Assembly: GCA_964035545.1 (NCBI GenBank)
Contig: OZ037773.1
Location: 5,423,751 to 5,487,750 of the forward strand
Origin: Bugula neritina
Taxonomy: Eukaryota; Animalia; Bryozoa
Reading direction: 5' to 3'
Length of the DNA stretch: 64,000 nt
Part shown: in pieces, positions 10,608 through 63,400 of the stretch
Position numbering within the stretch: position 1 is the stretch's first letter
How the letters are laid out: each line of letters opens with the position of its first letter
Notes under the pieces: model-generated
Told to the model about the DNA's origin: nothing
The model's database searches: none
The model's input: the letters and a program-made list of their open reading frames with translations, nothing else
Translations under genes and position numbers: made by a program

Positions 10608-13600
10608 TTATGCTTCGGGTTCCCCAAATCGTCTCTGAAAGTCTTTCATGAAGTCAGCTAATTTTAGAGCGTGTTCTACTGGCACTGCATTGTACAGAGA
10701 GGCTCTGATCCCACCAACCGATCTGTAATATTAAAGCATAATCGTGAACTTAGGATTATTTGCACAACAAATTATTTTCAAACAGTTATGTCAACATATA
10801 CTTCTGATACCACCAAATTTACACAGAAGAAAAATATGAAATTCAATACATAATCTGAAGACAGATTATAGAGAAAATGCTTTTCGTAACCATGGCGATA
10901 AATAATCAAGTTTGAGTAACAAACACTGAAGGTTGGAAGGTCTTTCTTTTGAAGCTTTAAACGGATTACATCAATATTAAAACAGTGACCTGTTGCCATG
11001 GGACATAAAAAGATTGCTGGCTCTTATCTTCACTAAAACTTGGTTAGTTTACTGGTTGCCATGACAATACCATTGAATATTAAACTAGACTATTTGAAAT
11101 GTTACTCAAATTCAACAATTACTTTTCAGCTGTCACAGTTTTAGGTGAGAAAATAAATTCCACTTCAAAAAAGTTCTCTTCACTACATATCCTAGCAACT
11201 ATCACCATTGATGCAATAATACTGACCTATGACCCTTCAACTATCACTATATATACAACAACACTAACCTATGACCCTTCAACCATCACCATATATACAA
11301 TAACACTGACCTATGACCCTTCAACTGAATCATGTGAAGGTTCTGAGCTTCTTCTAGAAATTTCTTCTCAAGATTCTCATTTCCATTTGATCCTCCAATC
11401 CTGAATGTCACATTCATTCTGCTTCTGTGTTCTTTATCCACAGCACAGCTGTTGGTTAACAAAACAAACAATTTTAGAAAATGATTAACCAATTCCCTAA
11501 AGCTACCCTCTTCAAATTTTATCATACTTTATTTTAATGTTTTTCAATGAACTTCAACTGGGCACTGCATTGCAATTAGTTGGCAGGATGATTTGTACAA
11601 TATAATAGTTGTTTGCTCGTGGAGAATCTACTTCTAAGAGAAGATAACTCCAAAAAATTACTAGCTTTGGTCATTAGCTGCATTTTTACTATTAGAACAT
11701 ACATCTAGTCTATATGATGACAAACACAATCTAGATTTTACTCATAGGATGTACTGCATAGGTTATGCTATTAGAGTATACATTATCAACTCACTGATAA
11801 AATTCGTTGGAGTTATCGATAATATCGTACAGCGCCGAGGATTTCAAGTTTGATTTTTCTGCCATTGTTTCTATTCCACCGTGCGTCTTCAACCACTCAA
11901 ACACCAACCCACACATGTATATGCTACAAGTATCGCGAATCTCATCACATAACTGTTTGATAAAAGAAGATAATATAATAAAGGCCTACAAATGCACTGA
12001 ATTATTGCACATCTTTTAAATGATGGAAGTTTTGTTACTGCAAATTGCATTTTGAAGCAACCTTGTAGGGTTGCTTTAGTTTGATTTACAGAAAAAGTTT
12101 TACTAAATAAAAATGATTTCTAAATTTATGCTAATGCAACGAACAACTGTAAATATTCCAGGACACGCGATAATCTAGACATATGATAGGGAGATAACTC
12201 TACATACCCATAACAGGGTGGTGTGTTGTAGAGGGAGTTGTTGGCAGCCAGGATCTTATAGTCGAGTACAGCGGGGGTGCTGGGCATAGCCCGACCTAAG
12301 AGATCTTCTCTTATGATCACCACAGTCACTCCTGCAGGACCCACATTCTTTTGAGCACCAAAGTAGATAACTCCGTACTACAACATAATAATTTACACCA
12401 CCATGTACAAGAGAACATAAATTAAACAAAAATGTTACAAGAGAACACAACTTCAAACTACATTGTAATATATATATAACCTTTGAGCTCAAAACCTTCG
12501 GAAAATGACCTACTTTTGAAATGTCGAGCTCTTTAGACAGGATGTTGGAGGACATGTCGGCTACGACAGGTATGTCGGGGTTGTGACTTGGGGGTTCCTG
12601 GAACTCGACACCGTGCACGGTCTCGTTGGCACAGTAGTAGATGTAGGAGGCGTCATTGTCTAGGTTCCAGTGGTTAACGTGAGGGACTCCTGTAGAACAG
12701 AATACATTCAGTGAAATGAGGAGGAAAATTATAGAATTTACGTAATGGTAGCAAGAGAGCTCTTGCATAACACATTGTTATAATAAAATGCTTAACAAGT
12801 AGTTTTGGAATTATCTTCTCATACAAAAATGCAACATTTGATGGCATATAATCCTAAATCTGCCTGAGATGCAATAACATCTTACAAAGATCACACAACT
12901 CCAAAAATCAGTAAGAATATGGAGACGGGTACTGATAACTCCCGACATACCTTTGAACTGTTTTGTGTGGGGGAGAACGTAATTGACTTTGCCGTATTTT
13001 TCTGCCTCTTTGGCAGCCTTCTGAGACCAAGTGCCTGTGACAAAATAGTCAGCAGAGTGGTTGGGTTTCAGTCGCATCAGATTCATTGCGACAGCAGCAA
13101 ACTGACCAGTGCCGCCACCTTGCACGAACAGCACCTTGTAGTTGGACGGAATATCTCTAAAATAAACCAACAGATATAAAGGAAGCTGTAGTCTATGTAG
13201 TGTTGAGTTGACCCAGTGGTGTAATGGTTAACACACTTGCTTTCATGCCAAAGGTCTCAGGTTCGAATCCCAGTGGGGGCCGATGTCTTTTTCCATAGTT
13301 GATATGTACAGGAGCAAATAACTACTGCATACAATTGATAAGCATAGATAAATAATTTTAGATATATATTATATCAAAAACTTACAGAAGATCTTGTAGG
13401 TTATTTATAGCTTGGGTAAGTATTTGTGTGAAGTCTGCTGATCTGTGACTCATTTCTGCAAAATAAACACAAACCTAGAATCTAAACTCAGCAAAAGTTG
13501 TTATGGAAAGTTATTCTAGAGTCATTTCTAAACACTTACCCATCACACTGATTCCAGTACCATTGAAGTTCAGCATCTCAGACTGAGCTTTCTGCAGAAC

Positions 13601-14197
13601 CTAAAACATTCAAGAAGAATCACTTGAGTAAATATGTCTAGTATTCAATCGATCAAAAAATCAAGAAGTTATATAACTATAATTATAGCTATAAGCACTT
13701 AGTGAGAGTCTAAATAGTAAATTATAGTCATGTGGTCTTGGAAGTTTTCAAAATTGTTCTAAAATAAATTCGTATAGTGATGGTAGTTTTGATCAAATTA
13801 TTAGCTAGTAGTAGCCATTAGCTAACATCAACATGGTCGATACGCATAACAACTTGGACTTGGTAATCGATCGGGCCAAGACTAGCGATAGGTTACTGAT
13901 TACTATAGAAGGACTAGTGTGCAGTAACTATGAGCACGCAGTATTTTTGCAATACGTAGTCGTACGGCATCTATCACTATGATATTGGACATCAACATGG
14001 CCCAAGTTTAACTTAAATTGGGACAAATACAATAGTCAATACTATAATAATAATTATTAAATTAATAATATTAGTATCTCTACTACTAGTGATGACAATT
14101 AGTGAATTACTCGAAAAGAATGGAGTCTTACCTCGAGCGGTAGTGCACTTGGTCCTGCTGCAAAGTTGAGCTTTCGGCCATGAGGTAAATGAGCCAT
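10608..14197 (-). CDS. PSAT1: Phosphoserine aminotransferase
   Basis: Nine GT-AG exons: 14197-14132, 13600-13540, 13455-13386, ~13156-12951, ~12689-12514, ~12378-12208, ~11923-11796, ~11448-11311, 10722-10608. Motifs [46 protein letters not shown] (PLP lysine), [14 protein letters not shown] and [17 protein letters not shown]. Confidence 0.97.
11200..11325. repeat. 42-bp tandem triplication containing the PSAT1 exon-8 end and 5' splice site
   Basis: On the minus strand GTTGAAGGGTCATAG|GT(C/T)AGT recurs with donors at 11310, 11268 and 11226. Confidence 0.9.
13210..13292 (+). mobile_element. tRNA-derived sequence (SINE head or tRNA pseudogene) in a PSAT1 intron
   Basis: A box TGGTGTAATGG, B box GGTTCGAATCC, then a T5 run. 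Acceptor and anticodon stems pair poorly. Confidence 0.6.
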
Positions 14198-16099
14198 GTT
14201 GCTGTTTAGTTATTGTATGGTGGTTTCTGGTAGCTTCAAGGCGCTGTGCTGTGTAAGAATGCCCGTTATGGAGTGAGTCACTTACACTCACTCAACTGTA
14301 ATTAAATAAAAGAGACCATGTGCTTGAAGCGTGATTTGGCGCTATCATGACTGGCAATTCTGCTATTTTCAACCAATCAATACAAAGCTTCGATCGTTGC
14401 CAGGCAACAACATACAAGCAGAGTCGTTCGTTCCTTGATGCTCCTCCCACACATCACGCCCCAGGGTAAATAGAATTTTCCGCTACCATTTGCACTTCAA
14501 ACTGTTCATAAAAAGCATAATTTTACCCTTGTACCCTTACTAGTCAGTGTGATTGCAACACTTGAATGGCAATAACTATGCAATCCGAGTTGTGCAAATT
14601 TTACATGCAAGAAAAAGTGGTTGTCAAATTGTAAATGGTGTACCAATTGCAGAATTGTACATGACTAGGTTGTTGTGGCTTTTGCACTTGAGTGAAAACA
14701 AAATAAATTCAGAAAGGCCTTATGCCATATAATTAATATAAAACTCCATTCTTGCTTGTCCATGCTACAAACTGACATATTTGTCCCTAAGAACCAACAT
14801 ATACTGTAAAAGATGCCCCATTCAAACCTCTTGCACAAAGCTAGCCGAGCTGAGCATATAAGATAGGGGGGGGGGGGGGGTTGCTAATGCTGAGTGATGG
14901 TAGTGCCTGGTACAGCAACCAAGGCTATTAAGTAGACCTGGTTTAACTTCTGTACTACTTGCTCACAACTGACTAATCACTCAACTTTCTAGCAAAAGGA
15001 GAAAATTTAAAAATATGCAGACTTCAATTTTGTGCTCAGCTTAGGTTTTGTGGAGGGTTTGAGTTCCAAATGAATGCATATGTTGGAACATTTAGCAGAC
15101 CATTTATATATCTTGTGCTTACTTAACATTCAATCCAAGCTTCTGTTTAATAATATTTCAAGTCAACAAAACCATTGCATGCTTATTGATGATTCCAATA
15201 GCAATTAAAGAAATTTGAGTTCAAACTGAAAAGTTGTCTAGATGAAAAAAGAATTCCATGTGAAACCAGAAGTGTGTTTTTACAGATTTTATATTTTGCA
15301 TTTTGAAATGGTGTTTCTGTATCATTTAGATTGTACATGCAATAAAAAATATTGTATATGTATATAGTATATGGAAGTATATAATTATGTTATATTATAT
15401 TATTGTATTTGTATAACATTATGTTTATAATTATATATATATGATAGTACATTATTATTATTCGCATTGTACAACAAAGCAATTTAAAAAAACCATTCGA
15501 ATAAAGTATTTTAAGTTAATATGATGAACTCACACTCAAAATCAAGAGACAAGTCCAATATGCCAAAACTGCTGATACTACATACAAAAAATAGTGGGCT
15601 TTGAAGAATCTTATTACATTTTTAAAATAATCATTACTTCAAATATTTTAAATATTTAACAAAATAAAATGTGTCACTGTGTAAGGATGAACCTAGCATG
15701 GAGCTTGTAACGAATCCGTATTCTGCAAATATATATAAAAACTATTTAATTATAACTGTTAAATATTAGTTTAATAGCAATAAAAGAAAAACCCATCATA
15801 TATCCTACAATAATATGATATTCGTGTAAATATAATATAATATTTTTGTCAAATATTAGAGCTGAAATATTTCTTAAGAAGACTACCCAGAATGCTCTTC
15901 AACAGCCTCAAATCTTAACTCTATTTCTGCAACATTTGATTGGTTTGTTTGGGAAGACAGGCTAGATTCTGGTTGCCAAAATTTGCAACTGAAACAAAAT
16001 TTTAAAAAATTCACTTGCATTTCAAATTTACATCCATGGGAGAGCTCTTGATAGTAGCCGTATTTAAGACATCTTCTACCCTTCACCATGCTGACAACA

Positions 16100-16222
16100 T
16101 GGTCCGTGGACTTTTGGTGCAGCTAACGAGGACATGATGGGATGCTCTTGCTAATATTACCAATGGCAAGGATTTGAACATGTGACCTGGCACACCAGGC
16201 CACCATTTAACCTTAGCTGCTT
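16100..16222 (-). mobile_element. Degenerate copy of the tRNA-derived SINE family
   Basis: Minus strand ...TGTTCAAATCCTTGCCATTGGTAATATTAGCAAGAGCATCCCATCA resembles GGCCATTGGTGATGTTAGGAAGAGCATCCAGTCA of the 62.5-kb copy. Confidence 0.5.
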
Positions 16223-16460
16223 CCCAAAATAGTTTGCAGAAATATCAGAATTGTGGTCTAGCTGTTACTTTGAGAATTGCAAATGTTATCGCGCTTGTTA
16301 CACCTTCAAATTGTGTTGCTTTAGAAGTTCGTAAGAAAACATCGCTAGTATAATTATTATACTGTGTGAAGAGTGGAAGAGTGAACTTTTTCATCAGCTA
16401 CTAACAAGAATTCACCCAGAAAGGACATTGCATCAGCCACACATTCCTTTGTAACTAATT

Positions 16461-17054
16461 CCTAATATGGGAGACTGGAAACTCTCATTAACCATTAAAT
16501 CCTAATAAGCATATTGCCGACAATTGTTACACTTGTTGTAGGACTGGGGACAGGCACAAATACCGCCCAAGTAGCTCTGACATCCAGTTTCTTAGGCTAG
16601 CGTCAAGCATTATCCTCCACCCAATAGAAATGATTAATGGACAAAGAACCATGCATTAGCCTGTCAAACTGCGGTTTTAATCTTTTATAATCACTGCCAC
16701 GGCACAGTTCCTAATATGGCACCATGGAAAAATTCAGTTTAGTTAAAATTCCTAATATGGGAGAGGCTTCTCTTCTCTGATTGGTCAGCCTTAATGCACG
16801 TATATAGACTAGGATTCACTAATTTCTTTCTTCCTAGCTTTGCATTTGAATAATTCAATTAGTAAGTTTCCTATACCATTGATCGGAGGCTATGCAGTGT
16901 ATCACGCACGCGAAGCATGCTTTCCAATACTGTTCACTGTAGCTTGTCTTTCCCTAATATGGGAGCTAGTTATTCCTAATATGGGAGAGTAGAGAAATCG
17001 CGACAGTTCCATTTTCCTAATATGGCACACAATACCATACTCTCTTATATAAAG
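16461..17054 (+). promoter_or_regulatory. Cluster of six identical CArG boxes (CCTAATATGG, SRF/MADS sites) ending in a TATA box
   Basis: CCTAATATGG at 16461, 16710, 16751, 16953, 16975 and 17016; near-match CCTAATAAGC at 16501; inverted CCAAT (GATTGG) at ~16779; TATATAAAG at 17046-17054. A further CArG (CCTAATAAGG) lies at 18215. Confidence 0.75.
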
Positions 17055-17492
17055 CCACATCTTAAGCTTACTTCACACCAGTATGCATACACTACTACTG
17101 GAGTATCTAGTGAGACTTCACAGATACAAAACCAACCGGACTTACATTTTTTATCATGCTAGAAGAATTAATATAGACTTTCAAATATCATTTGGAATAT
17201 TAAGTCATGCCTTGAAAGCATGGCTTAAATTATTTACTCAGTTGTAAAATTTTGGTTGTAAATGTTTACAGGTATGCCAATAATTGTCATGCACTGATTT
17301 CATGCTTTTAGTTGAGGAATTTTTTATCATGTGAATCTTACATCCAGGGTTTAGACTGCTTTGTGTTGGGATTATATTATTATGAATGGGAGATACTCTG
17401 AAGTTTCAATACTGATGTGTGGATTGAGGGCAAGTGGAATGTTAGGATACATGAAAGTAATGCTTATATATAATATGTATGTAGGCCTATAC

Positions 17493-17494
<2 letters not shown>

Positions 17495-17578
<84 letters not shown>
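17495..17578. repeat. (TA)n microsatellite
   Basis: Seen directly. Confidence 0.95.
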
Positions 17579-17584
<6 letters not shown>

Positions 17585-20500
17585 TTAAATATATATAATA
17601 CATTTTGTATATAGTATATAGCATATGTATTATAAATGAAATATATAATTTATATTTAATAAATGTTATAAGTAGACAGCATTATAATAGAAAGTTAAAT
17701 AAATTGATGATACAGAATTTTATAGATCTTACTATTATTTTTAATAGCTTTTTATTTCAAGGTTATTTTCTCACCTATCTCCCCTTTGTCCTGTTCTGGT
17801 AGTGGGTTTTATTTCAATATTATATATTTTGTAAATTATGCAAAATATATTTTTTATTTTAAATTGTAAAACATGGTTTAGTTTTATTAACTATAAATAT
17901 ATAGATGAGATGTATTGGACACCTCTTAAACTCCTAAACATACCTATGTTAACTGTGTGGACAACAGGCCTGGTGGACAGACTGGTGTGAATTGCTAAGA
18001 GTAACTACTAGTACAGATTTAATTTAGTAAGATTTCTTTTGTAAGTATAATATAATATATGAGTTATAAGCTGCACAGTGACTATGCATTTTAGAATCCA
18101 TTATAATAACGTTATTATGGTCCCAAGCTGCTGGCATTGATTTATTACCTTCCTTGAGGCAGAACGTGGAAGCATGTCACGTGAAGCATATAACAGCTGC
18201 ATGATGGAAGATTTCCTAATAAGGGATATTGGAAGAATAGAACAATGCAGACGGTACTTGAATCCAAATAACCACGCGGCTAGTGCGTGATTGTAGTAAG
18301 GGCTGTAAGGCCGAGTACGCCTAGCATTGCAACAAGGTTACTATACTACTACAATGCTACTTTGATAATAGCGTTGTGTTCAAATCGTTTGAACCGCAAT
18401 GGGGTGAATATTGAGTGTAAATATTTTAGTAACGTGGCATTAAAGCTAGTTCTTGCACTGAAAGAAATAATTAACACAGGCAGATAGCAATGCCTGCATT
18501 ATATGGAAGAACTCTGCAATCCTCTCAGTATGTCTGTAAGGATGTTAACTGGAATAGCTAAGTTGTAACTCCAAGCAGGATATTTTAACATAATTTCAGC
18601 GTTTGAAGAAGAAAACACTGCACCACGGCAGTTGGAGAATTATTCAAGACCAAAGCATGTGAATTTATAATTTCAAAAAAACTTGGTAGTTTAATATCAT
18701 ATTAAGAAAAACAATTTAAGCTATATGTATAGACCTTTTGCAGCTAAAATATTATTTTAAAGTGGAAACTTTAGCAAAAACCTTAAAATAATAAACTAAT
18801 ATGATAAGATTATACTTTATCGAGACATTCACATATAAGAGATGTCTCACATCTTTGTATATAGAGCACAACTCTCTAGCTTAGAACTGCTAGCATTGCC
18901 TTTAGTAGGTACAGGGTTATTAGCTGTGTGTATTATAGAGTAGTGCCTTTAGGAGTTATCTACTTTATGTCACTTGCAGTTATATAAGTTATAGTTATAT
19001 AAGGATTTTTGAAAATAAATGGATGTGGCTTGAATCTATTAATGTAGCTGTATCACTCTAACCATCGCTCTACTTCACAAGATAATTTGCATAGCAGAGA
19101 TGTTTTGTGGGTATGTAATGCCATGCAGCATGCCATCTCTTTGGTTTAAAACACTACCCATGGCATATAAATAAATTTTTGACACTGCGTCATGCAAATT
19201 TAGACTGTAATACAACTATTTACACACTTATGATTCCTCCAATACACATTTTACAGAGTTAATCAGATGATTGTCTAGCTACATCTTGCAGAGTGTATTC
19301 TTTGAAATTTACTGGAAATAATTCCTTATCGTACAGACTGCCATCGGCGTACAAGTCACGTGACACTAAAATACCATAATATATGACACTCATGGACACC
19401 TGTCACCCATGTCATTGGTTTACCATGTCCTGGCAATGACCTGTAGCCTACTGTATATTTCACTGCTTCAACATAACAGAGTTTTCAAAAGTGTAGGACA
19501 ATGACAGCGCATTTCTACTACATTGTCTACATTTATTGGCAAACACCTAGTGGAATGTATGCGCTACATGTGTAAGAAGTTGCAAGAAGGGAAACCTTGA
19601 AGATAAAGACGCAGTATTTTGTTCAAAGTGAAAGACAATGCTGAACCAGTTATAGAGCTTGGAACAACTTAACTTGCAAATTTGATTTCATAATTTTCAA
19701 AGCAAATTAGACAGTAATTATGTAGCCCTCTGGCATTTAAGTAGTTATTAAATAATCAATAAACCATTATTTGTAATCACATATGTAATTGCTTAACTTT
19801 ATTTTCTACTCTTCTAGATAGTTCATGTTAATACTAAATTATCTAATCATTTAATTCAGCTGTACAACATTAATACATGAATGTAACTGACATAAGGTTT
19901 CGTCTGATAATTCAACATTCAGTACTAGCTAAATTATAATAATTTCCTATACGTCAATGATATGCTGTTATTAAACTTATTTCTCACAGTTTGACAAATT
20001 ATTGGTTTAGCATCACACTAATTTAGGAAGGATAACTCCACTTTATAGGTTTCGTATAATGATTATTGTCAATTTGAATATGTCTGCAACTAGTTACTAG
20101 AGAATATATTATTATTATATTACTACGCAGGCATCCGTTAGTGTTATTGAATAGTTATAACCCGACCTATAATGATTACCCAGTATCCCAATTCACTAAC
20201 TATTGTTAGACTTCATACATTGGAACAGCTGATGGTGGAAAGCTAAGGGCATATTTTTAGCTCATTAAATGATATTACATTATGCCCACCATAGAAATAA
20301 TATTTTAGATAAACACAAAGTACAAATTTGTTAGCTCTTAAAAATATATTTAAATAGTATAGACTATAGTATATTCGAACAATGTATTAGACTCTAGAGA
20401 GAGCGGGAAATTTACGTACTTTAATAAAGAGAGGACAACCCTGCATTTCATAACAAATTCTGAAATCAAATTTAATACAACGGAACTAAAGTAAGCGGCC

Positions 20501-21218
20501 TGTGTAATTAAAAAACTGTTGGTTGTAGTTTAATTGACAACTTTGATATATACGGACAGTATATATACTCATAGTATAATTTTATACTACTAGTATATAT
20601 TATTAGGAATCATAATTATTATATTAGGGACAGTTTTTACACTGCATACAAACTTTAGTATGAATGGCAATGCAGTTGGATGCATTCTACTTTGCAGCAG
20701 TTGCTTTCCTACATCGCCTGAGCTAACGCAGATGCACCAAGTGTATTTAATTGTACACCATGCCTCTAGCTAGTCGGCATTCAAACCAATGGTTGCATTG
20801 TGAAGAATGTAATTATATCAACAGGTGGGCCATTATTTTATCAACGTTAAGTAGAGGCTTCATGTTGATGGAACAATAATTTGTGTCAAAAATGGCCTCT
20901 GTTAGCCAAGCATACATTCTAACATGACTAACAGCTGAAAAACCTTTGCCCATGGCGCCCTGTATAACTAATACTAATAGCCAGACACTAAATTGTCAGT
21001 GTGAAATAAATATCTTGGGGTAAATTTGTTACCAAGTCAATGCGGACAGCATAAGGACAGAACAGAAGCTTTTGATTAGCTGTAATAACTAGTACCTCAA
21101 TTTTAGGTATTAAAAACTGGGACATATCAATATGAATCATAATGGAGTGCATTACTAGAAACCTAAGACAATTGTGATGAATATACTTGAACATTGAACT
21201 CTTGATACAGTATTTAGT

Positions 21219-21234
21219 GGCCCTGAAAAGGGCC
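21219..21234 (-). terminator. Histone H3 mRNA 3' stem-loop
   Basis: GGCCCTTTTCAGGGCC on the minus strand ~30 nt after the stop; purine-rich HDE CAAGAGTTCA at 21204-21195. Confidence 0.95.
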
Positions 21235-21263
21235 GTTGGGGTTTGGTTTACACTTATGGAAAT

Positions 21264-22253
<990 letters not shown>

Positions 22254-22279
22254 ACTCAAGACCCTTCAACAACCCCAAC

Positions 22280-22295
22280 GGCCCTTTTCAGGGCC
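22280..22295 (+). terminator. Histone H4 mRNA 3' stem-loop
   Basis: GGCCCTTTTCAGGGCC followed by ACCA; HDE CAAAGTGTTCA at 22308-22318. Confidence 0.95.
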
Positions 22296-23157
22296 ACCAA
22301 TTTTTACCAAAGTGTTCATATGTTCTTACCTTACGTAGCTTTCCTTGCTACATTGTTGAAATAAAATTAATATTCGAATAAACACCATGTATAATGCCAT
22401 ATTCTAGACTGGAGTCGAGAAGTTCTGGTGTGCCAGCATAATTATTAATGGCTTAGAGCTGATGATCCTTTAAATCACTGCAAATGTCTTTAAAAGCAAA
22501 CTCAAGTTCTATGTAGTCGTACCACTCCCATTCTGTAATACTAATAACTATTGAGAAATTATAATGTAATAATCTTAGAATGCATAACATCATTCTCGTG
22601 GCGATTTAGAGCAACAGCTACTGCATTGAATAATATAAAATTTTACATTTTCATGGTCACCAAGGAGCTCCAAACCAGTCACCAGCACTGATACGAGTGC
22701 AAACTGAACTAGTAATTACTAGTACTATGAACAGCGATTGCTGTTAGGTTAAGACTGATGTGAAGTGATGGTGAATGGATTGCGAGTCCAGTTACATGTT
22801 GTTATCACTAGCTGAATACTAAACCCTCAGAGATTAGTACTAGCAGTCAACAGCGACGGATAATTTTGAATTATTGGGTACCGGCAACCTCAACAACTTC
22901 GTTGTGTTGAGTGATAATCTCGTGCACAATTACTCTTACAAATCTGTAAATTATCATGTGTAGTTACTCATTGGGACATGTATCTTTATTTTCCTGCCAG
23001 CCAAGCACATAACCCTTGTAACTACTGTACAGTAGGCATTTATGATCACTAAAGAACTACAAAAATTACAAAGCTGTGTAAATTCCCAAAGTATGCATAT
23101 TTATTATGAATATGAAAAACAATATTTGTGAACACCGCCTCTTTTCAAAGAAATGGT

Positions 23158-23173
23158 GGCCCTGAAAAGGGCC
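23158..23173 (-). terminator. Histone H2A mRNA 3' stem-loop
   Basis: GGCCCTTTTCAGGGCC-ACCA on the minus strand; downstream AAAAGAGG. Confidence 0.95.
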
Positions 23174-23202
23174 GTTGGGTTTAATTAGGGTTTTGTACAC
23201 AT

Positions 23203-23580
23203 TTAGGCAGCAGCTTTCTTGGTCTTGCTGGGCAGCAGCACGGCTTGTATATTTGGCAACACACCACCTTGGGCAATAGTGACACCTCCTAAGAGTCGGT
23301 TCAACTCCTCATCATTTCTGATGGCTAGTTGCAGGTGACGGGGGATAATTCTGGTTTTCTTGTTATCTCTGGCAGCATTTCCTGCCAACTCCAAAACTTC
23401 AGCAGCCAAGTACTCCATCACAGCTGCAAGGTAGACTGGGGCACCGGCACCAACTCTCTCGGCATAGTTGCCTTTGCGAAGTAGACGGTGGATTCTTCCC
23501 ACTGGGAATTGCAGTCCAGCCCTGGAAGACCTGGTCTTGCTCTTACCCTTTGCCTTGCCTCCTTTTCCTCGTCCAGACAT
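23203..23580 (-). CDS. H2A: Histone H2A (canonical)
   Basis: 125-aa [11 protein letters not shown]...[12 protein letters not shown]...; no C-terminal SQ(E/D)Y, so not H2A.X. Confidence 0.99.
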
Positions 23581-23882
23581 TTTGAGTACTAAGAGTAGTT
23601 ATTAGTAAATACAGCTTGAGTAATGGCATACGAGGAATTGTTTAGTATTTATAGGTATAAGGGGTAGTTATAAACTATCCAATCATAAAAGAAGACTTAA
23701 ACGGACGTCTTAGTAGAGCTCATTCAAACACATTTAATATCGACTTACTAGAGCGTTCAAACCGGTAATTAACTATTGGCCAATGAAATGTGTGAAACTA
23801 TCTAATTTGCATATAATTTGATATATAAACTCACGCAACCGCGGTGGTCTGCATTCAGTTTTGACAACACAATAAACTCGAC
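23581..23882. promoter_or_regulatory. Bidirectional H2A/H2B promoter
   Basis: 302-bp head-to-head spacer with TATA boxes (23646-23653 minus, ~23822 plus), CCAAT boxes, octamer-like ATTTGCAT at ~23805, and the shared 16-mer at 23699-23714. Confidence 0.75.
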
Positions 23883-24251
23883 ATGCCTCCCAAAGTAAGC
23901 TCGAAAGGTGCTAAGAAAGCAGGCAAGGCAAAGGCAGCCCGTACCGGCGATAAGAAAAAGAAGAGGAAAAGGAAAGAAAGCTATGGAATCTACATCTATA
24001 AAGTATTGAAGCAGGTGCACCCCGACACTGGTGTCTCAAGCAAAGCTATGAGCATCATGAATAGCTTTGTCAATGATGTGTTCGAAAGAATTGCTGGTGA
24101 AGCATCAAGACTTGCTCACTACAATAAAAGATCCACCATTACCAGCCGGGAAGTGCAGACCGCAGTGAGGTTAATCCTTCCAGGAGAATTGGCCAAGCAC
24201 GCTGTATCTGAAGGTACAAAGGCAGTCACTAAATACACCAGCTCCAAGTAG
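23883..24251 (+). CDS. H2B: Histone H2B
   Basis: 122-aa ORF ...[21 protein letters not shown]...AVTKYTSSK. Confidence 0.99.
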
Positions 24252-24276
24252 ACGTCTTCCAGTTTCATACCCCAAC

Positions 24277-24292
24277 GGCCCTTTTCAGGGCC
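24277..24292 (+). terminator. Histone H2B mRNA 3' stem-loop
   Basis: GGCCCTTTTCAGGGCC-ACCA; HDE CAAAGAGTTCA at 24306-24316. Confidence 0.95.
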
Positions 24293-27200
24293 ACCAAACC
24301 CAATTCAAAGAGTTCATATGATCTCGATGCAGTCTAATCAAATTTGTTTATACGGCTTGCTTCATAGTTCATTGTCATATATATAAATTAAAATTCTTTA
24401 CTTGTAAAATGCGTTGATTTCTAGAGTATTCTTATATTGCGTATATATTTTCAAATACACCATTTGCTAAATCATAACAGTGATAAGGGTTTGAATTCAA
24501 AATATGAAACATCAACTCTGTAAATTTAGGTGGTTGGTTGCCTAGTTATTAAATTGAGCTGTGCAATGCAAACATTCACTTCAAGTACTACCCATTCAAA
24601 ACCTAAATTGGTTTGTTGGCTTCAACGTAAATACTCAACTTTAACGAGTTGATTGCATCTTTGTCTCAATAAAAATGTATCAATAGCAAGTGGCTACGCG
24701 ACTGCACAATTCCAAAATGTAAAGAATGTTGGTGCCACTGAACTGGAAAAAAACCACAATTATTATGCCATCTCGCTAAGGAAAATTCAACTACCCAGGT
24801 TCTTGAGAATGCTCGATAAATTATGGTTTGAGTCATAGAGGAAACATTGCTGCACCCATCTTTAAATCTAGTATGCAGGAATCGTTCTACAAGCAGCTCG
24901 AATCATTCTATAGACTATAAATAGCTGCAAGTCGGGGGTTACAGAGTGCAGTAGTTTGGGATTCTTAAGTTTACAGTTAGGGGTGTAAATTGAAACTCCA
25001 AATTCGAGAAAACAAAACTGAACTCAATTGCCTCCAACTTGGAGCTGCTTATTGAACAATTCGGACTGCAATGACGATTTGGTTGTTCCGCAGTAGTACC
25101 AATAGTAGTATTATTTCAGTTCGACAGTCCACGTGAGTAACAGCCACTAATTCTCAGTCTGAAAATCAAGTATTTCAATTTGCAGTAAGATCATGAGTTA
25201 GACAAAAACCCTTATATTTATAGTTTATATAAATATAATCAAATATGATATAATTCAGCTTTTAGTTTTAGTCCAAGTTCAGATTTATCTATCAGTATCA
25301 CAATCACCGAATCAGTGAATCACTCAATCAGGGAAAATGAATTAGAATGAATATTATTATGATTATTTATGAATATCAATACTATACAGTATACTGTTAT
25401 TGTAATTTTTAAACTTAAGTCTTGATGTTATTCAGTCATATAATGATGGAGTTGAATTAATGTTATTATAAAATTAAATATAATGTAAATGAATATAAAT
25501 TATAATAATAATGTATTATTAACATTAATATTAATACTTATAGTTGTACTATAACTATATTTCACTATTTGTCATTTTTATTTTAAACATACTTCATAGA
25601 GATAGTTCATAGTTATAGTATTACTATTAGTATTAGTATTAGTATTCATAGTTCATAGTATTAGTATTTCTATTAAGCCCATTATTATTATTATTTAATA
25701 AATTTAATATTTCAAATAATGATATTAAATTTAGTAAATATTAATAGCAATGCTTTGAAGTGTGATTAATATTGTTATTATAATTCTTATAATCATTGAT
25801 CATATTGATAATGCAAATAATGATGTTATAATTATTTGTATTATCAATATAATCAATGATTATAATGATTATGATTATCATAATGATTGAAGTGTATAGT
25901 AAAGAGTTATCTGTTCTTGAATTATAGATAAATAACAATAAAATAGAAAACGCACTATTCTATTCAATAGATCTTATAGTTTTGGCATACTGTTATTTTG
26001 TTGTATTTTAATTAGTCTTTAGCCCACTGCACTGGTAGAATTTTTTTGTTATGAATTAAAGTTATAGGGAATATTTTTATTTCTGCTCTCTTTGCAGTCT
26101 GAACTCAAAAATAGTCTTCACCAGTTCTCTGTAAGATGGGGATGGTTGCACCCACTGAACTGAAACTATAGTTATAATTATAGTTCAATGGTTGCACAAG
26201 CAAACATATTGCCATATAAGAGTTATGGTCCCATGTATTTTTGAGGTGACGACCTCAAACTCAGGCCTTCTAAACTACTTTTCCTTAGAGGTGTTTGATA
26301 GAAGGAAAGTAAATAACCCCCCCCCTTCCGAATTATATTCATGGTAATCCCGCTATGACAGAATAGCTGGCTAATTATGTCTCCATGTAACACCACCTCA
26401 TAAACTCTGTTTTAGGCACATTTATTTTCATGAAATGTTATACAATAGTTGGATATGTCAAGCTAGTAACTTCAATTAATTTGAAAATTAACTTTTACTT
26501 AGCATCTAACCACAAATTTTACATGTTAGCTTCAAAGTATATACTTTTTATTAAATGCCTAATTTTTTTATTAAAAGAACAGATTCATTGGCTATTATCA
26601 AATTTCATGTAACAACTGAAATGCCCTGCTTAGTTTGTTAGTCTGAAGATTTAATCATTTGTACAATCAGTGTGAATGTTTTGATTAATGCACATAACTT
26701 TGTCAATATTTCAAAATGATAAGCTGTTTTTAAGTTGAAAATATTACTGAATAAGTTGCCACTCTTTGGGAGTATCTAGATGCATGAAGTAGGGGAATGC
26801 TAATGTTTTGAAACTTGCTAAATAGTTGGTAATAGAGAATTGGAAAGCTTTTATGAGATGTAAGACTTTTGAAATATTGCCAACATACCAATGTTGTAGG
26901 TTCGGTCCCTGATGTGCCAACCTATCCCCTACCCGCCCCCCACCCTTCACCCCAAACCCCCCATGATAACAGATATGGTGTATAAGGAAACCTGACTGGA
27001 GTTGCTAAAGGTAACGTAAAACATTGAAAACTACACTTTTATTGTAGTTGTATATTTCTCAATAGATATTATAAAGCTGCCACTTTTTCTAAGGTCATTC
27101 CTTGATGGTTAAAATTTTTCATAGCTCAGCCATCTTAATCTCACAGTATTTTAAATAATTAAATAGATAATTAAATTAAATATTGTGAAATAATGATTAT

Positions 27201-27652: not shown

Positions 27653-30600
27653 ATGGCCGACAATACTCAGTTAGACGCAACAGGTCGTGACCCTCTGGTA
27701 TTTTATCTTTTTGATGTCGATGGAACTTTGACTGAAGTTAGAAAGGTTAGTTAAGCTAAAGTTGTTTTTTCAACCTATAGCTGATGTCATTAAGTATTTT
27801 ATAGTATAAATATCCTTTAATAGAGGCAAAATATAGAATTCTAATTCTATTCCTCTTAACTTTTGTTTTCATTTATTATTTACTGTAGAAATTTTAGAGT
27901 TTGAATTTCAATGTTTCAAAATTTGTTGCTTCTTAAAACCAGTTCTAGTGAAAATAGAGAACAAATAGTAACTTAGATAACCGTTCATCTATTCTAATAG
28001 AAGTTTGGTCTATGCACTGCACCATTTGCTATATTGACTAGCAAATAATTATGCCTTATTTGAACTAGTAAGCAGTTATAAGTTTATGGGAATCAAAGTT
28101 CTTTGCATGCCATATGCCGTTACATTTTCCTGTACGTTTTTAATACTTCTTTAAAATATATTTTTAGCATTTGTTAGATGCAGGATGTTTTGAAAACATT
28201 TTTATTTAATTTTCCAGCTTGGGACAAGCTGGAAATTAAATAAAAATATTTATATAAAAATATCTATATAAACATATATAAAAGTCAGCTTGCTTTGCTT
28301 TGCTCTATCAGGTTTTCAACTCCCAGTATTGTATACTCACAATCAGTAAGAGTACAGATTACTATGCTATCATAATGTCTGGGTGTCTGTTCTATTCGTA
28401 GACCATTTCGAGAGAAATGATGGAGTTCATGCAAGAAATCAGGAAGAAGGTTTATTGCGGAATAGTTTCTGGCTCCGACCTTGAGAATGTCAATCAACAA
28501 CTCAGGGGTCAAGGTAAAAGTTTCTTTGTTAGTTTCCGCAACCGTTGAACATTAGGTAGGCATAGCATTGTTCAGTTTTAGTGATTAGTTGTTGTATTTA
28601 CAATGTCATTAAGGGGGTTGCTTTGCCTTGGTAGTTGGTAAACTTTGAGTTCTTGTTTGAACCAGTGAAAAACCTGTATGAATCATATAAAGTCAAAGGT
28701 CAATGCATGCCTAGCAAGTGCAAATAACATGATAGTAAGTTAGCTTTTGCTACTGGGTTGAGTGTGTTTTGGTGCCGCTGTGCTGCGGAACACATGTTGT
28801 TTGATGTACCGTAATTCTATTGGGTAAGACCATGTAACATATTTGATAATGTTAAATCACCATTCTCATGAAGATGATCAATAGTCGGAAGAAAAAGTTG
28901 CTTTTGGTGTGCTATATATGTAGTGCTGCAACAATTAAATGGACATGTTTTACTGGTTAGTTGAAAATGGCCGCGGAAGTAGAAAATGGCTCAATTGCTT
29001 TACTTTCCCCTTTGAAAATTCAATCAAACTCTACGTCTAATATTTCCTCTTTTAGTCTCACTAATTTCGTTAAGATCTCCTGAGAAGCTTTTGTAGTCTC
29101 ATCTGCCATACTTGTATTATTATTTCGCTTGTAATCAAAAGTTTTGGAGTGCTGCAGTAAAACTACAATTTAAAACATACCAAGAGCTGTTTCTGTTTAG
29201 GTATTTTATAAATTTTCAAACTGAGATTGAGTAACATCTACATCTTTTGGACTATTTCGTTTTTCAGTGATAATTTTCAACTGTAACTCCTTCATGTTGA
29301 AACTTATACACATCCAGTCCCACATGGTGCTATTTCAACTACACAGCCATGTTGCAGTTAGTTTTGTCGACTGTCAGTGTATATGTTTTACCATTTGATA
29401 TGAATTTTATGTTGCAGCGGTTGAAAAGTTTGATTATGTCTTCACTGAGAACGGGCTAACTTACCACAGAAACGGCAAACTTACTCTTAAAACTGTAAGA
29501 TTTCATAACCTACAGATACTACAACTTATCAGGAATATAGTTTTTAAGAACCATTTTTCATTTTATTTGAAAGAATATTGAGAAAAAACGAGGTGTTTTT
29601 ATTGTTTATACGGTTAGTTGTCTCCCTCAATCAGGAAGTGAATCATTTTTTGACAACTATATTATTTTCTTGTCGTTAAATTCCAGAACATCTGCAATTA
29701 TCTCGGGGAAGAGAAGCTGCAGGAAGTACTGGATTTCTGTCTCAAGTATTTGTCGGAACTCAAACTGCCCATCAAAAGGTGAAGGGAGAAAACTCTAAAT
29801 CTAGTGCATTTTGTATATTTTAAAAAAATTGATTGTGAAACTAATAATTAGAGTAAAAAGTTCTGACCTTATTTCAAATGGTTTCAGCTCATTGTATTCA
29901 ATTATGAAAACAAATTTAAACTAGGCATAACTTAAGTTTACAAATGGTCGTATTGCACTTATAACAGTACATTGTGTTGCATTTGAAAATTAGATTAAAT
30001 TTTATGCTTTAGAGGTCAGTTTATTGAGTTGAGAAGTGGTCTGATAAACGTCTGTCCTATGGGAAGGAATTGCACAAATGATGAGCGAGAAATCTTCATA
30101 AACTACGACAAGGTATCATTTAAACTTACCCATTAGTCATGTTCCACAATACATAATACATTGTTTTTTATGCAATTTATTGCTACAAAATATTTTGTGT
30201 ACATTTTACTACCTACTCACTTAATTATTAATGATGTAATAATATGGAAAACACATGATGTAATATCATGGAGAATACTTTATGTAAAACTATGGGAATT
30301 ACGTAATTGTAAAAACATGGTAAACACGCGATGTAATAACACGGAAAACAATCTAAAATAAAAAAATTTCAGGAACATCATGTGAGAGAGAACTTCATAG
30401 CAGAGCTTAGCCAAAAATTCAATGACGCAGGTCTGGTGTACAGTCGGGGAGGCCAAATAAGTTTTGATATCTATCCCCGTGGCTGGAACAAGCGCTATTG
30501 TCTAGATCATATTGATGCTGATGGATTTGAAGACATCCACTTCTTTGGAGATCGCTGTGAGCCTGTAGGTGTCATTTAGCTATTCTGCCGTGTTCCATAA

Positions 30601-60400: not shown

Positions 60401-63400
60401 GCAACATAAAGATTTAACTCCAGAAAACCACAAGAAACTCATTTTAACCCAATTATAATGTATCTCTACACTATCAACTTGACATTACTGAGTGCAAACA
60501 GTTTGCCAATAAACAATGTACTAAAATGTTTCTAAAAATAGCTTACCTTTATTTACTAACACACTGAGTAAACAGAGAGCTACTTATTGTCTGAACTAGT
60601 TAAAGCTAAAATTAGACATACTATCTTCTGTTTACATAAATACAAGATCTCCAAAACATATTTTCATTTTGTCAATTAAACTCATTTTAGACACAGTGCA
60701 GGAAATACAAGTGACAGGAAATTGTCTTCCCTTACCTCAAGTATGAGTTTTCCAAAGTCTAGTAAATTATATCCTTCAAAATGATACAAAATACTTTGTA
60801 TTTCCTGTATCCTCATAGCGTGTTCGTGAGATCGTTTCAGCTCGTTGATGTTGTGAGCGCAGTTAGTCATACACTGCAGAGCAGACGTTATGGTCCCCCT
60901 ACCTGCACTGTCTTCTGGGAAGTGTTTCAATAGGCTCTACAAACAGCATAACTCAGAATAGACCAGGTAAAACTCAACTAATCCAGAGGGTTGTGCCACT
61001 CAAATTCTCACAAATACAGCTTATACAAAATTCTGCATAACCTGAGGTGACGGAACTTATGTCTCACAGGCTAAGAGGACAGAAATAGAACTTCAACAAT
61101 AAAACCAAAGCGGAGAAAAAGTTGTATATTATTGAAAATACCAATAAACTGGCTACTGGCTTCTTATTAATATTTGCATCAAAGATTTTAAACATGCAAT
61201 AATTTATCTCATTAATATACTATTCACATATTATATTTTAATTTTATTTCTACAAGTAATTCTGCCACATTTTCTTCTAAAGTGACTTTTCATCTATTGA
61301 AATCCAACAAACAACAAGTCTGTCTAATAGAAAAGTGGAAACAGTATTTACCTGCAGAAGGAGATGATACTTAAGTATTCTTTGCACAGGTTTATGTAAA
61401 TAGGATCCAACAGGTAGTCCGTGACCCAAGATAAGTTGTCTCTTTCGATATGCATCATTCACTACCGCCCGCCTTAGTATTCGGCTCAAACATGTTATAG
61501 AACTACAAATCAAAACACACCAAACACATAACGCAATGAGTTTTTAAAATTTAATGTACATAAAAAATAATATGTTAACTCAAACATTTCAGCTAATGGT
61601 TCAAGTAAAGTTAAATAAATAAAATGTTTAAAGCATGGCTAGGCATATTTGCGAAAGTTTATACTCTGTAGTATTGTCAGCCCACAGCAGCCATGTTAGA
61701 TGACGCATAGCGAAATCAACTCAATATTCTAAAATGAGTAAGTGAAATATTTTTTGCAGTTCTAAATTAAAGCTGTTAGTAAAACTCTGTGTGATTGAAA
61801 GATGGGTAGTGAAGCTTTGCAGATTTGAATTCCACAACAGATGCAGAGTTTTTCTTAACAGCAGAAGAAACTTTGTGTACTTTGAGGTACTGAAAATATC
61901 ATTTTTAGTAAATGCTGATAATTTGGGTAGTCACACAAAAACCTATACTGAGAGTAACTGACATGGTATTAATAGCAACTGTAGCAGAACCGAAACTAAC
62001 ACCAACAATTTCCAAAACAAAAACCAAAATACTGATGCTGAGGTCAAACTAAATACCATCCAGAGCTGTCACAGAGTTGCAATATTAGAATAATTATGTT
62101 TATATTATTCTTAGTTTACTGGCTCCAGTGTTTTTATTGGTCGTTACCTAAATGTCAAATCAATTATATTATATACAAAATCGCTACTGTATTAAGCAAC
62201 CAATATCTTATATTTAACCTTTGGCGCAAGTTCAATAAACATTATAATTATCATATATATAAAAATATTTACGAGTTATAATTTAATATTTGAATAATTT
62301 TAGTAATGAAAACTGTTGCCATGGTAACTATATACTAGTATTTATGCTGTTGCTGAACAACAACTTTTTGAAATCTCGAGAGCCATATGATTGCTGACTT
62401 TGTGCTTGCTGACCAAGATGTTAAATCTGACACTTTGCATCATCTTTAATCGATATGTGCAATGCTACTAACGCAGGTTTATAGTCACCATCCCTGTGAG
62501 AACCCCCGGATGGAAGGAGTTTTTTTAAAGTGGACTAAGGACTTATTCATATGTGGCACAGGAGCAATTATGACTGGATGCTCTTCCTAACATCACCAAT
62601 GGCCTTTACTGGGGCTCAAACCCATTGCTTCGTGTTTATTAAGCCAATACTATAACCTCTAGACCACGGCTGCAATACCACTGCAGTTCTCTTTGTGGGT
62701 AAATATTATGTCTCTTCAAAAAGCTCAAACTTAAATTCTAGTTGAACTTTTTTAGTAAAAGGTGCAAAAATACACTTTTCAGGAGCTGCTACTAATTCAC
62801 ATGGCTCCTGCACTCTACTATGGGAAGTTCCTACTTTGACATTTTAAGCATCTCCAAAACCTTTTCCTTGACAATCTAACAAGTTAGAGAAAGAGACGCA
62901 TTCACCACTGCACTAAGTGTTGGCACCAACCAAGCTGGCATAGGAAACACTACAAGTGGTCAGTAAAAACTTTTGTTGATTTGAATAACATTTCGTATCT
63001 TTGATGTTACAAAAAATGCTCTAGCCTATGAAAGTTTCAGATGACAGAAGAGCAACACAACTTTGATAGTCTGAGTAAAACTGCAATAGTCTGAGTAGAG
63101 CTGTGATAGTCTGAGTAGAGCTGTGATAGTCTGAGTAGAATAACAATGTGTAGGAAGCAGGGCTTACTTGGGATAGTTTGTGACATATTCAGCGTAGATC
63201 TGGAAGTCATCTCCCCTGTTGATAAAACACTTGGCTATCTCAACGGGTTCTTCTTCACACTCTTTCAGCTCATTCAGAAATGATCTAAAGTGGCAGCGTT
63301 GTATAAAAATGTGGCCATCAAATGGCAGCATCATTAAAGTAATGAGTTATTTCTCTCATAATCAATTATATTTCGGTATTATCTACCAACAATTTGTCAA

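Follow-up and report, generated by a model that had tools for sequence, protein, structure and literature searches.

A conserved cluster of six identical CArG boxes in Bugula neritina, most likely a selectively maintained SRF-type regulatory module

The core of the c-fos serum response element (SRE) is CCATATTAGG, a sequence that serves as an SRF-specific EMSA probe for the vertebrate factor, and synthetic 5x SRE and 5x SRF-RE reporters carry the same core upstream of a minimal TATA box. From fungi to animals, SRF has been conserved together with its DNA specificity, and its dimer also touches bases outside the 10-mer. In the systems studied, CArG sites act regardless of orientation and distance. 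The vertebrate beta-actin promoter has the order CCAAT-CArG-TATA; its exon 1 does not code for protein, and a CArG enhancer lies in an intron. The vertebrate alpha-actin genes have three or four CArG boxes. In yeast, the MCM1 P-box is TTTCCTAATTAGGAAA, which contains the half-site TTCCTAAT. To our knowledge, cis-regulation in Bryozoa is essentially unstudied.

The locus described here lies in a 64-kb stretch of Bugula DNA, which we call the window. It is of a kind that is already known, the multi-CArG SRF-type promoter or enhancer, and is a new example with an unusually clean architecture. It resembles c-fos SRE and EGR1-type promoters in having the identical 10-bp core (CCATATTAGG, on the - strand) and several boxes grouped a few hundred bp or less from a TATA box, but differs from them in having no obvious canonical Ets/TCF site beside the boxes and no immediate-early protein gene downstream. 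The preliminary description of this DNA had recognized the reverse complement of the box as the c-fos SRE core, and the match to that core, the one used as an SRF-specific probe, is exact. Like the actin promoters, the locus combines CCAAT and several CArG boxes with a TATA box and a likely non-coding first exon, and it has conserved CArG and E-box motifs ~1.1-1.2 kb downstream that resemble an intron-1 enhancer; unlike in those promoters, no coding sequence for actin or another structural gene follows the cluster. The handful of CCATATTAGG cores directly upstream of TATA also recalls the synthetic 5x SRE reporters, whereas the Bugula locus is natural, has other flanks and spacings, and occurs in two genomes that are ~10-16% diverged. 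With the MCM1 P-box the boxes share the extended half-site TTCCTAAT, a flank that SRF-type MADS-domain proteins can read, but they are asymmetric, TTCC flanking only one side and GGGAG or GGCAC the other, and the host is an animal.

The cluster is located ~2.3 kb upstream of PSAT1 and is divergent from it, PSAT1 being on the - strand (exon 1 near 14102-14209, exon 2 near 13385-13474). A histone quartet starts ~4.1 kb downstream of the cluster, in the order H3, H4, H2A and H2B; the H3 coding sequence is at 21264-21674 on the - strand and its 3' stem-loop at 21193-21239. The next gene on the + strand is phosphomannomutase-like (PMM2), near 29.4-30.6 kb.

We found six copies of CCTAATATGG, all on the + strand, at 16461, 16710, 16751, 16953, 16975 and 17016 (a span of 565 bp), and no further copy on either strand of the 64-kb window. 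The chance expectation is 0.20 copies per window of this size, and none of 100 dinucleotide shuffles yielded six. Five of the six copies have the longer form TTCCTAATATGG, with starts at 16459, 16708, 16749, 16973 and 17014; the remaining one, whose box is at 16953, has TCCCTAATATGG instead. The counts given in the preliminary description (six copies in 565 bp, five of them in the longer form and none elsewhere) thus hold for the whole window. Matches to the general consensus CCWWWWWWGG are also scarce in other Bugula DNA: there are only two elsewhere in the window and only one in ~80 kb from five other loci (L001 and L003-L006), and the background in the Bugula genome is about one site per 30-40 kb.

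The six boxes, which are of high-affinity type, all have the same core, the same orientation and a common 5' TTCC flank, and three copies are identical over 17 nt, well past the 10-bp CArG core. Two types can be distinguished by their flanks. Type A, (A/T)TTCCTAATATGGGAG(A), consists of the boxes at 16461, 16751 and 16975, and also the one at 16953, which has TCCC; type B, TTCCTAATATGGCAC, consists of those at 16710 and 17016. Read along the + strand, the array begins with box 1 (ATTCCTAATATGGGAGA, 16461-16470, type A), and 38 bp past it is a degenerate box (CCTAATAAGC, 16499-16508; longer form TCCTAATAAGC), which we call the eighth box and which is one position off the consensus, the last G having become C. 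Then follow box 2 (GTTCCTAATATGGCACC, 16710-16719, type B), box 3 (16751-16760, type A; 41 bp past box 2), box 4 (TCCCTAATATGGGAGC, 16953-16962), box 5 (16975-16984, type A; 22 bp past box 4) and box 6 (17016-17025, type B; 41 bp past box 5), which ends the cluster 20 nt before the TATA box. Two pairs of boxes, 16710/16751 and 16975/17016, are therefore separated by exactly 41 bp, and across the boxes as a whole the spacings have no consistent period that would indicate helical phasing. A seventh box, TTTCCTAATAAGGG, lies further downstream on the + strand at 18215-18224. It departs from the others inside the A/T core, yet it obeys the CC(A/T)6GG rule, as do all seven boxes (six of CCTAATATGG and one of CCTAATAAGG).

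The half-motif ATGGGAGA also occurs on its own, at 16036 and 17386, and five of its seven occurrences in the window are within the CArG locus. YY1 recognizes GCCATNTT, a sequence present on the - strand of the type B boxes, and GCCATATT, the reverse complement of box 2, also fits the YY1 consensus.

For comparison we fetched other loci by means of the exact H2B and H2A proteins of the window, drawing on GCA_010799875.2, a draft assembly of the genome of Bugula neritina, a bryozoan (PMC7576161), and on two JGI metagenomes. One of these loci, L002 (contig VXIV02002702.1 of GCA_010799875.2), has the same six boxes and is orthologous to the window. Local matches between the two have 85% identity over 17970-25444 (~7.5 kb) and 90% over 16106-17597, and the surrounding non-coding DNA differs by ~16%. 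Regional identities were taken from a global alignment of 15300-21700 with L002. Non-coding DNA on the two sides of the locus is 75% identical (15300-16454) and 84% identical (17607-21190), the cluster block (~16580-17060) is 95.7% identical, with 100% identity across 16900-16999, and the H3 coding sequence is 95.9% identical. Among 483 sliding 470-bp windows of non-coding DNA in the PSAT1-H3 interval, the cluster block (16580-17050) ranks first, on a par with the H3 coding sequence.

Within the cluster, the extended boxes have no mismatches in 90 nt, as against 7.6% in the DNA between boxes and 16% in background non-coding DNA. Thirty-nine mismatches were found in the cluster, and none of them falls in the six extended boxes (P ~8e-4 at the local rate; P = 0.012 for random placement of six 15-mers). 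The preliminary description had posed motif conservation in a relative beforehand as a check that might refute it, and all six boxes are unchanged in L002. Also retained there are the seventh box (at 4407 in L002), the 10-mer of the degenerate box, and several promoter elements described below. The pattern suggests purifying selection on the boxes relative to the inter-box and flanking DNA, an interpretation that is suggestive and not conclusive because it comes from a single pairwise comparison inside one species complex. Since a diverged sister lineage keeps all six boxes unchanged, the array looks like a real switch.

The arrangement downstream of the boxes is that of a core promoter. The TATA box, TATATAAAG, is at 17046-17054 on the + strand, and an initiator-like TCACACC that fits YYANWYY was read from the sequence at 17073-17079 on the same strand. 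Transcription would be predicted to start at A17075, 29 nt past the first T of the TATA box. The spacing from TATA to initiator is within the ~25-31 nt expected for an RNA polymerase II core promoter, and both elements are identical in L002. Three CCAAT elements accompany the boxes, all of them, like the boxes, no more than 600 bp upstream of the TATA box: one at 16621-16625 (+ strand), in a 110-nt block with only two changes relative to L002; an NF-Y-type Y-box or inverted CCAAT, CTGATTGGTCAG, at 16777-16788 (- strand), which is identical in L002; and one at 16924-16928 (+ strand), inside the fully conserved 16900-16999. The Y-box and the two CCAAT boxes are all retained in the orthologous locus.

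From the predicted start, a putative non-coding first exon (17075-17271, + strand) would end at one of two candidate donors, CTA/GTGAGA (17109/17110) or CAG/GTATGC (17271/17272). Both donors are present where the preliminary description had placed them, as is the TATA box 20 nt past the last CArG box at 17046. The second site, TTTACAG/G at 17271, could be an acceptor instead of a donor. Conservation drops past the TATA box: 17050-17199 and, with it, the first ~150 nt past the predicted start are only 80-88% identical to L002 and contain indels, and this downstream region evolves at a roughly neutral rate. Identity returns to ~96% in 17200-17400. Further on, the alignment with L002 contains a conserved block on the + strand at 18178-18224, made up of two E-boxes, CACGTG (~18178) and CAGCTG (~18195), together with the seventh CArG box. 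The block may act as an enhancer, either within an intron or downstream.

Searching by eye for Ets/TCF sites of the form (C/A)GGA(A/T) beside the boxes, we found only TAGGAA, whose GG is that of the box itself, and a TGGAAA separated from the box by 6-7 nt, neither of which is a good Ets consensus. For this reason the label 'immediate-early' used in the preliminary description is not established; that word, like 'strong', was carried over by analogy with vertebrates only. Muscle-type logic is equally possible by analogy, given the seventh box with its conserved E-boxes and the layout like that of beta-actin, but no structural gene follows.

We considered several ways in which such an array could have come about. 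The flanks of the boxes are unrelated beyond ~17 nt, and local alignments of the three box-bearing units do not outscore controls made by shuffling the DNA between boxes. The array is therefore not a tandem repeat, in agreement with the preliminary description, and not a recent segmental duplication either, and we set aside a segmental-duplication origin of the boxes because similarity between their flanks is not above that of controls. A multi-copy transposon with subterminal repeats was another origin on which that description had asked for a check. A BLAST search with 16100-17480 covered the remainder of the window and 16 loci, 202 kb of Bugula DNA in all, and found no second copy of the cluster. 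There are no terminal inverted repeats longer than 10 nt at the cluster, and the locus is orthologous in both lineages, so that within these 202 kb there is no sign of such a transposon. Histone quartets on four other draft contigs (L001 and L003-L005, which have long flanks) have different neighbors and no boxes, and because the cluster is missing from them, it does not belong to the histone repeat unit. The sequence also excludes contamination by a reporter vector, since the flanks are unlike a cassette and two diverged genomes, assembled independently of each other, both have the locus.

We then looked for a product of the region downstream. Stop-free, indel-free blocks of at least 25 codons between 16100 and 21200 have no coding signature on either strand, judged by an excess of synonymous changes relative to L002; the H3 gene, used as a control in this test, has 17 synonymous and 4 non-synonymous changes. 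The twenty longest stop-free segments downstream have no match in Pfam, and no database record matched the ORFs spanning the promoter. The draft-genome record of L002 has no gene call from H3 to the end of the locus, the authors of that genome having predicted genes with AUGUSTUS and transcriptome hints (PMC7576161). All three approaches (coding signature, Pfam and draft annotation) thus bear out the earlier statement that no recognizable protein gene lies downstream. The same searches speak against a muscle-type SRF/myocardin target such as an actin-like gene, as they find no structural protein gene in 17.05-21.19 kb. A search of sequencing runs with 16300-21150 listed one run, which is not recorded as RNA; with a query of 4.85 kb, an RNA shorter than ~250 nt could escape such a search.

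Two of the products that the preliminary description had put forward found no support. A micropeptide was one of them, and the candidate is a 54-aa ORF in the putative exon 1 (17083-17247), which is frameshifted in L002, has no exact record and has no relatives on record. A second suggestion was that the transcript hosts a miRNA. In Rfam searches only the H3 stem-loop and a TA-repeat artefact matched, so no RNA family was found in the 4.1 kb downstream. Our hairpin scan found nothing miRNA-like there, the best folds having -22 to -26 kcal/mol and average conservation. The miR-1-like seed TGGAATGT is present at 17435 and 19551, but this is its chance frequency and the folds around it are unremarkable. 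We also rejected a small pol III or spliced-leader RNA starting at 17075, an idea prompted by the TATA box and a T-run at 17147: there are six substitutions relative to L002 in its first 35 nt, the T-run is displaced by an indel in L002, Rfam has no match, and the z-score of the fold is only -2.1.

The locus is most likely, on the sequence comparisons above, a selectively maintained cis-regulatory module of SRF (MADS-box)-type sites. We estimate a probability of about 0.5 that this SRF-type module, together with the TATA/Inr promoter, drives a fast-evolving, non-coding transcript on the + strand from ~17075. SRF dimers would occupy the CArG boxes, with a cofactor reading the asymmetric flanks; the bound SRF would bring in RNA polymerase II at the TATA/Inr core promoter; transcription of the + strand would begin near 17075; and the resulting non-coding RNA, spliced or not, would be under little sequence constraint. 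A conserved promoter followed by an unconstrained exon is the usual lncRNA pattern. From the motifs and their arrangement we infer SRF as the binder, the start site, the direction, the type of product, and any specificity for a stimulus or tissue. The overall interpretation in the preliminary description therefore stands in part: the promoter-like layout (CArG boxes, three CCAAT boxes, TATA box and initiator) and its conservation favor it, and the miRNA-host and micropeptide products lack support. Some observations go against our main reading. Conservation of the putatively transcribed region does not exceed that of neutral DNA, a pattern that would suit an enhancer equally well, and the identical 15-17-nt extended sequence in the six boxes exceeds what SRF needs for specificity. 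Because the uniformity of the boxes goes beyond the requirements of SRF, their true reader could be another factor or a composite.

A bolder form of this reading, which we offer only tentatively, is that the locus is a natural 'SRF sensor': a single-copy, selectively maintained promoter with six CArG boxes and TATA/Inr, which would yield nothing but a non-coding RNA that evolves rapidly, an SRF-driven lncRNA of immediate-early or muscle-lineage type. Such an RNA might link growth signalling with the adjacent PSAT1 and histone genes. In any event the locus is a compact, conserved and easily testable candidate for an SRF-responsive promoter. If active, it would be an endogenous reporter for SRF/MRTF signalling during larval settlement, myogenesis or the response to wounding in Bugula; it would be a case of the high-affinity core of vertebrate c-fos type being used unchanged in a lophotrochozoan; and it would add to the lncRNA-type loci in which selection acts on the promoter but not on the sequence of the transcript. 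A silent locus, or one that serves only as an enhancer, would be an ordinary motif cluster.

We think it somewhat unlikely that the cluster is instead an SRF-type enhancer for a neighbor (PSAT1, the histone quartet or a more distant gene), with transcription from the TATA box as an enhancer-RNA-like by-product. The near-neutral evolution of the DNA past the TATA box (80-88% identity, with indels) would be expected in that case, as would the lack of any product in the 4.1 kb downstream in the coding, Pfam, Rfam and hairpin checks. CArG sites are established to be independent of orientation and distance elsewhere, and a further conserved block of CArG and E-box motifs lies ~1.2 kb downstream. 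Against this, a perfectly conserved and correctly spaced TATA box and initiator 20 nt past the last box is the anatomy of a proximal promoter, and every box has one orientation relative to them. Nor are PSAT1, the histone genes or PMM2 SRF targets as far as we know, and the other histone quartets that we fetched have no such cluster.

A factor other than SRF could read the 15-17-mer (A/T)TTCCTAATATGG(GAGA/CAC), in which case the match to CArG would be a coincidence; such a factor might be a homeodomain protein (TAAT core), a protein like YY1 (CCAT core) or a lineage-specific zinc-finger protein, among others. The identity that extends to 17 nt in three copies points this way, as do the common orientation of all copies, though a CArG box is nearly symmetric, and the recurrence of ATGGGAGA alone at 16036 and 17386, with five of seven occurrences in the locus. 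We nevertheless regard such a factor as unlikely: the six boxes and the seventh all have strict CC(A/T)6GG, the seventh despite its altered A/T core; the core is identical to the best-studied SRF site; and it is established that SRF contacts outer flanks and that the MCM1 P-box shares TTCCTAAT. Least probable of the readings, and in our view very improbable, is that the locus is a relic that no longer functions. It would be what is left of an old transposon or satellite of low copy number that had internal repeats, or else a promoter orphaned by insertion of a mobile histone quartet, with apparent conservation due to a short divergence time. A multi-copy SINE-like element does adjoin the block at 16100-16200, conservation was gauged from one pairwise comparison, and histone quartets occupy at least five unrelated places in the genome, from which we infer that they have moved. 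However, the boxes have none of the 39 cluster mismatches, and the block matches the conservation of histone coding sequence while the flanks are 16% diverged. The cluster also lacks terminal inverted repeats and is not repeated elsewhere in the 202 kb, and where the SINE-like element recurs, the loci are without CArG boxes. Because both lineages already carry the histone quartet, an orphaned promoter would have had time to decay.

Some smaller features of the region can be mentioned. The SINE-like, multi-copy piece beside the conserved block is ~100 nt long. The pair pattern CCTAATATGG N8-38 CCTAATATGG matched more than 120 unrelated metagenome contigs, with no Bugula label among the matches listed. 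A (TA)n tract occupies 17483-17606. ORFs and tandem repeats were analysed on the corresponding stretch of L002, which has a TA tract of its own. The extra 1.2 kb in L002 is not an exon; it is a 5'-truncated LINE reverse-transcriptase fragment inserted in the tract.

The H3-H4-H2A-H2B histone quartet is present at a minimum of five places in the published draft genome of Bugula neritina, GCA_010799875.2 (loci L001-L005 and L131-L133), with identical H2B and H2A proteins. Because its neighbors differ entirely from place to place (SH3, GPR137, DIL/myosin, AAA_33 and Arf), the histone genes are organized as dispersed quartets and not as a tandem array, and copies of the quartet seem to have spread through the genome. 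The first protein gene on the + strand beyond the quartet in the window is a phosphomannomutase (PMM2-like) gene, with exons at 29399-30576 (+).

Comparison of window positions 15300-26800 with L002, the orthologous locus in the draft genome, showed that non-coding DNA differs by 10-16%, and that there are lineage-specific insertions–for example, about 7.5 kb of extra sequence after the quartet in L002. This level of difference, together with the insertions, suggests that each assembly represents its own cryptic species within the B. neritina complex. In the draft-genome lineage, a 5'-truncated non-LTR retrotransposon (L002:2532-3347, - strand; its 271-aa ORF encodes the C-terminal region of a reverse transcriptase) sits within a (TA)n microsatellite, with TA tracts on either side at L002:2348-2482 and L002:3657-3888. 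Window positions 17600-17970 lack this retrotransposon. The long (TA)n tract at window 17483-17606 is a perfect palindrome, and it is the source of a spurious Rfam match to mir-297.

Further downstream, a 180-nt block (window 18311-18487, +) has no indels and >95% identity to L002, with indels directly at both of its borders. In each lineage one frame runs for 57-67 codons without a stop, but the two copies differ by 3 synonymous and 5 non-synonymous changes; the window copy has no Met, and no Pfam match to the frame was found.

The half-motif ATGGGAGA, the 3' portion of a type A box (one of two flank types among the six CArG boxes), occurs alone at window 16036 and 17386, flanking the cluster. 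The window holds seven copies of this half-motif, five of them within the CArG locus, and the solitary ones may be remnants of CArG boxes or sites for a separate cofactor.

A degraded copy of a SINE-like element (window 16100-16200) borders the conserved block of the CArG cluster on its left side. This element, roughly 100 nt long, is unrelated to the CArG boxes and is multi-copy, with other copies at about 62530-62650 in the window and in the draft genome at L001 (501-621, 5558-5678), L003 (1875-1995), L004 (3110-3230, 3435-3555, 13254-13374) and L132 (16793-16913). Its consensus, ...GGCACAGGAGCAATTATGACTGGATGCTCTTCCTAACATCACCAATGGCC...GGGGTTTGAACCC, looks like a tRNA-type box B.
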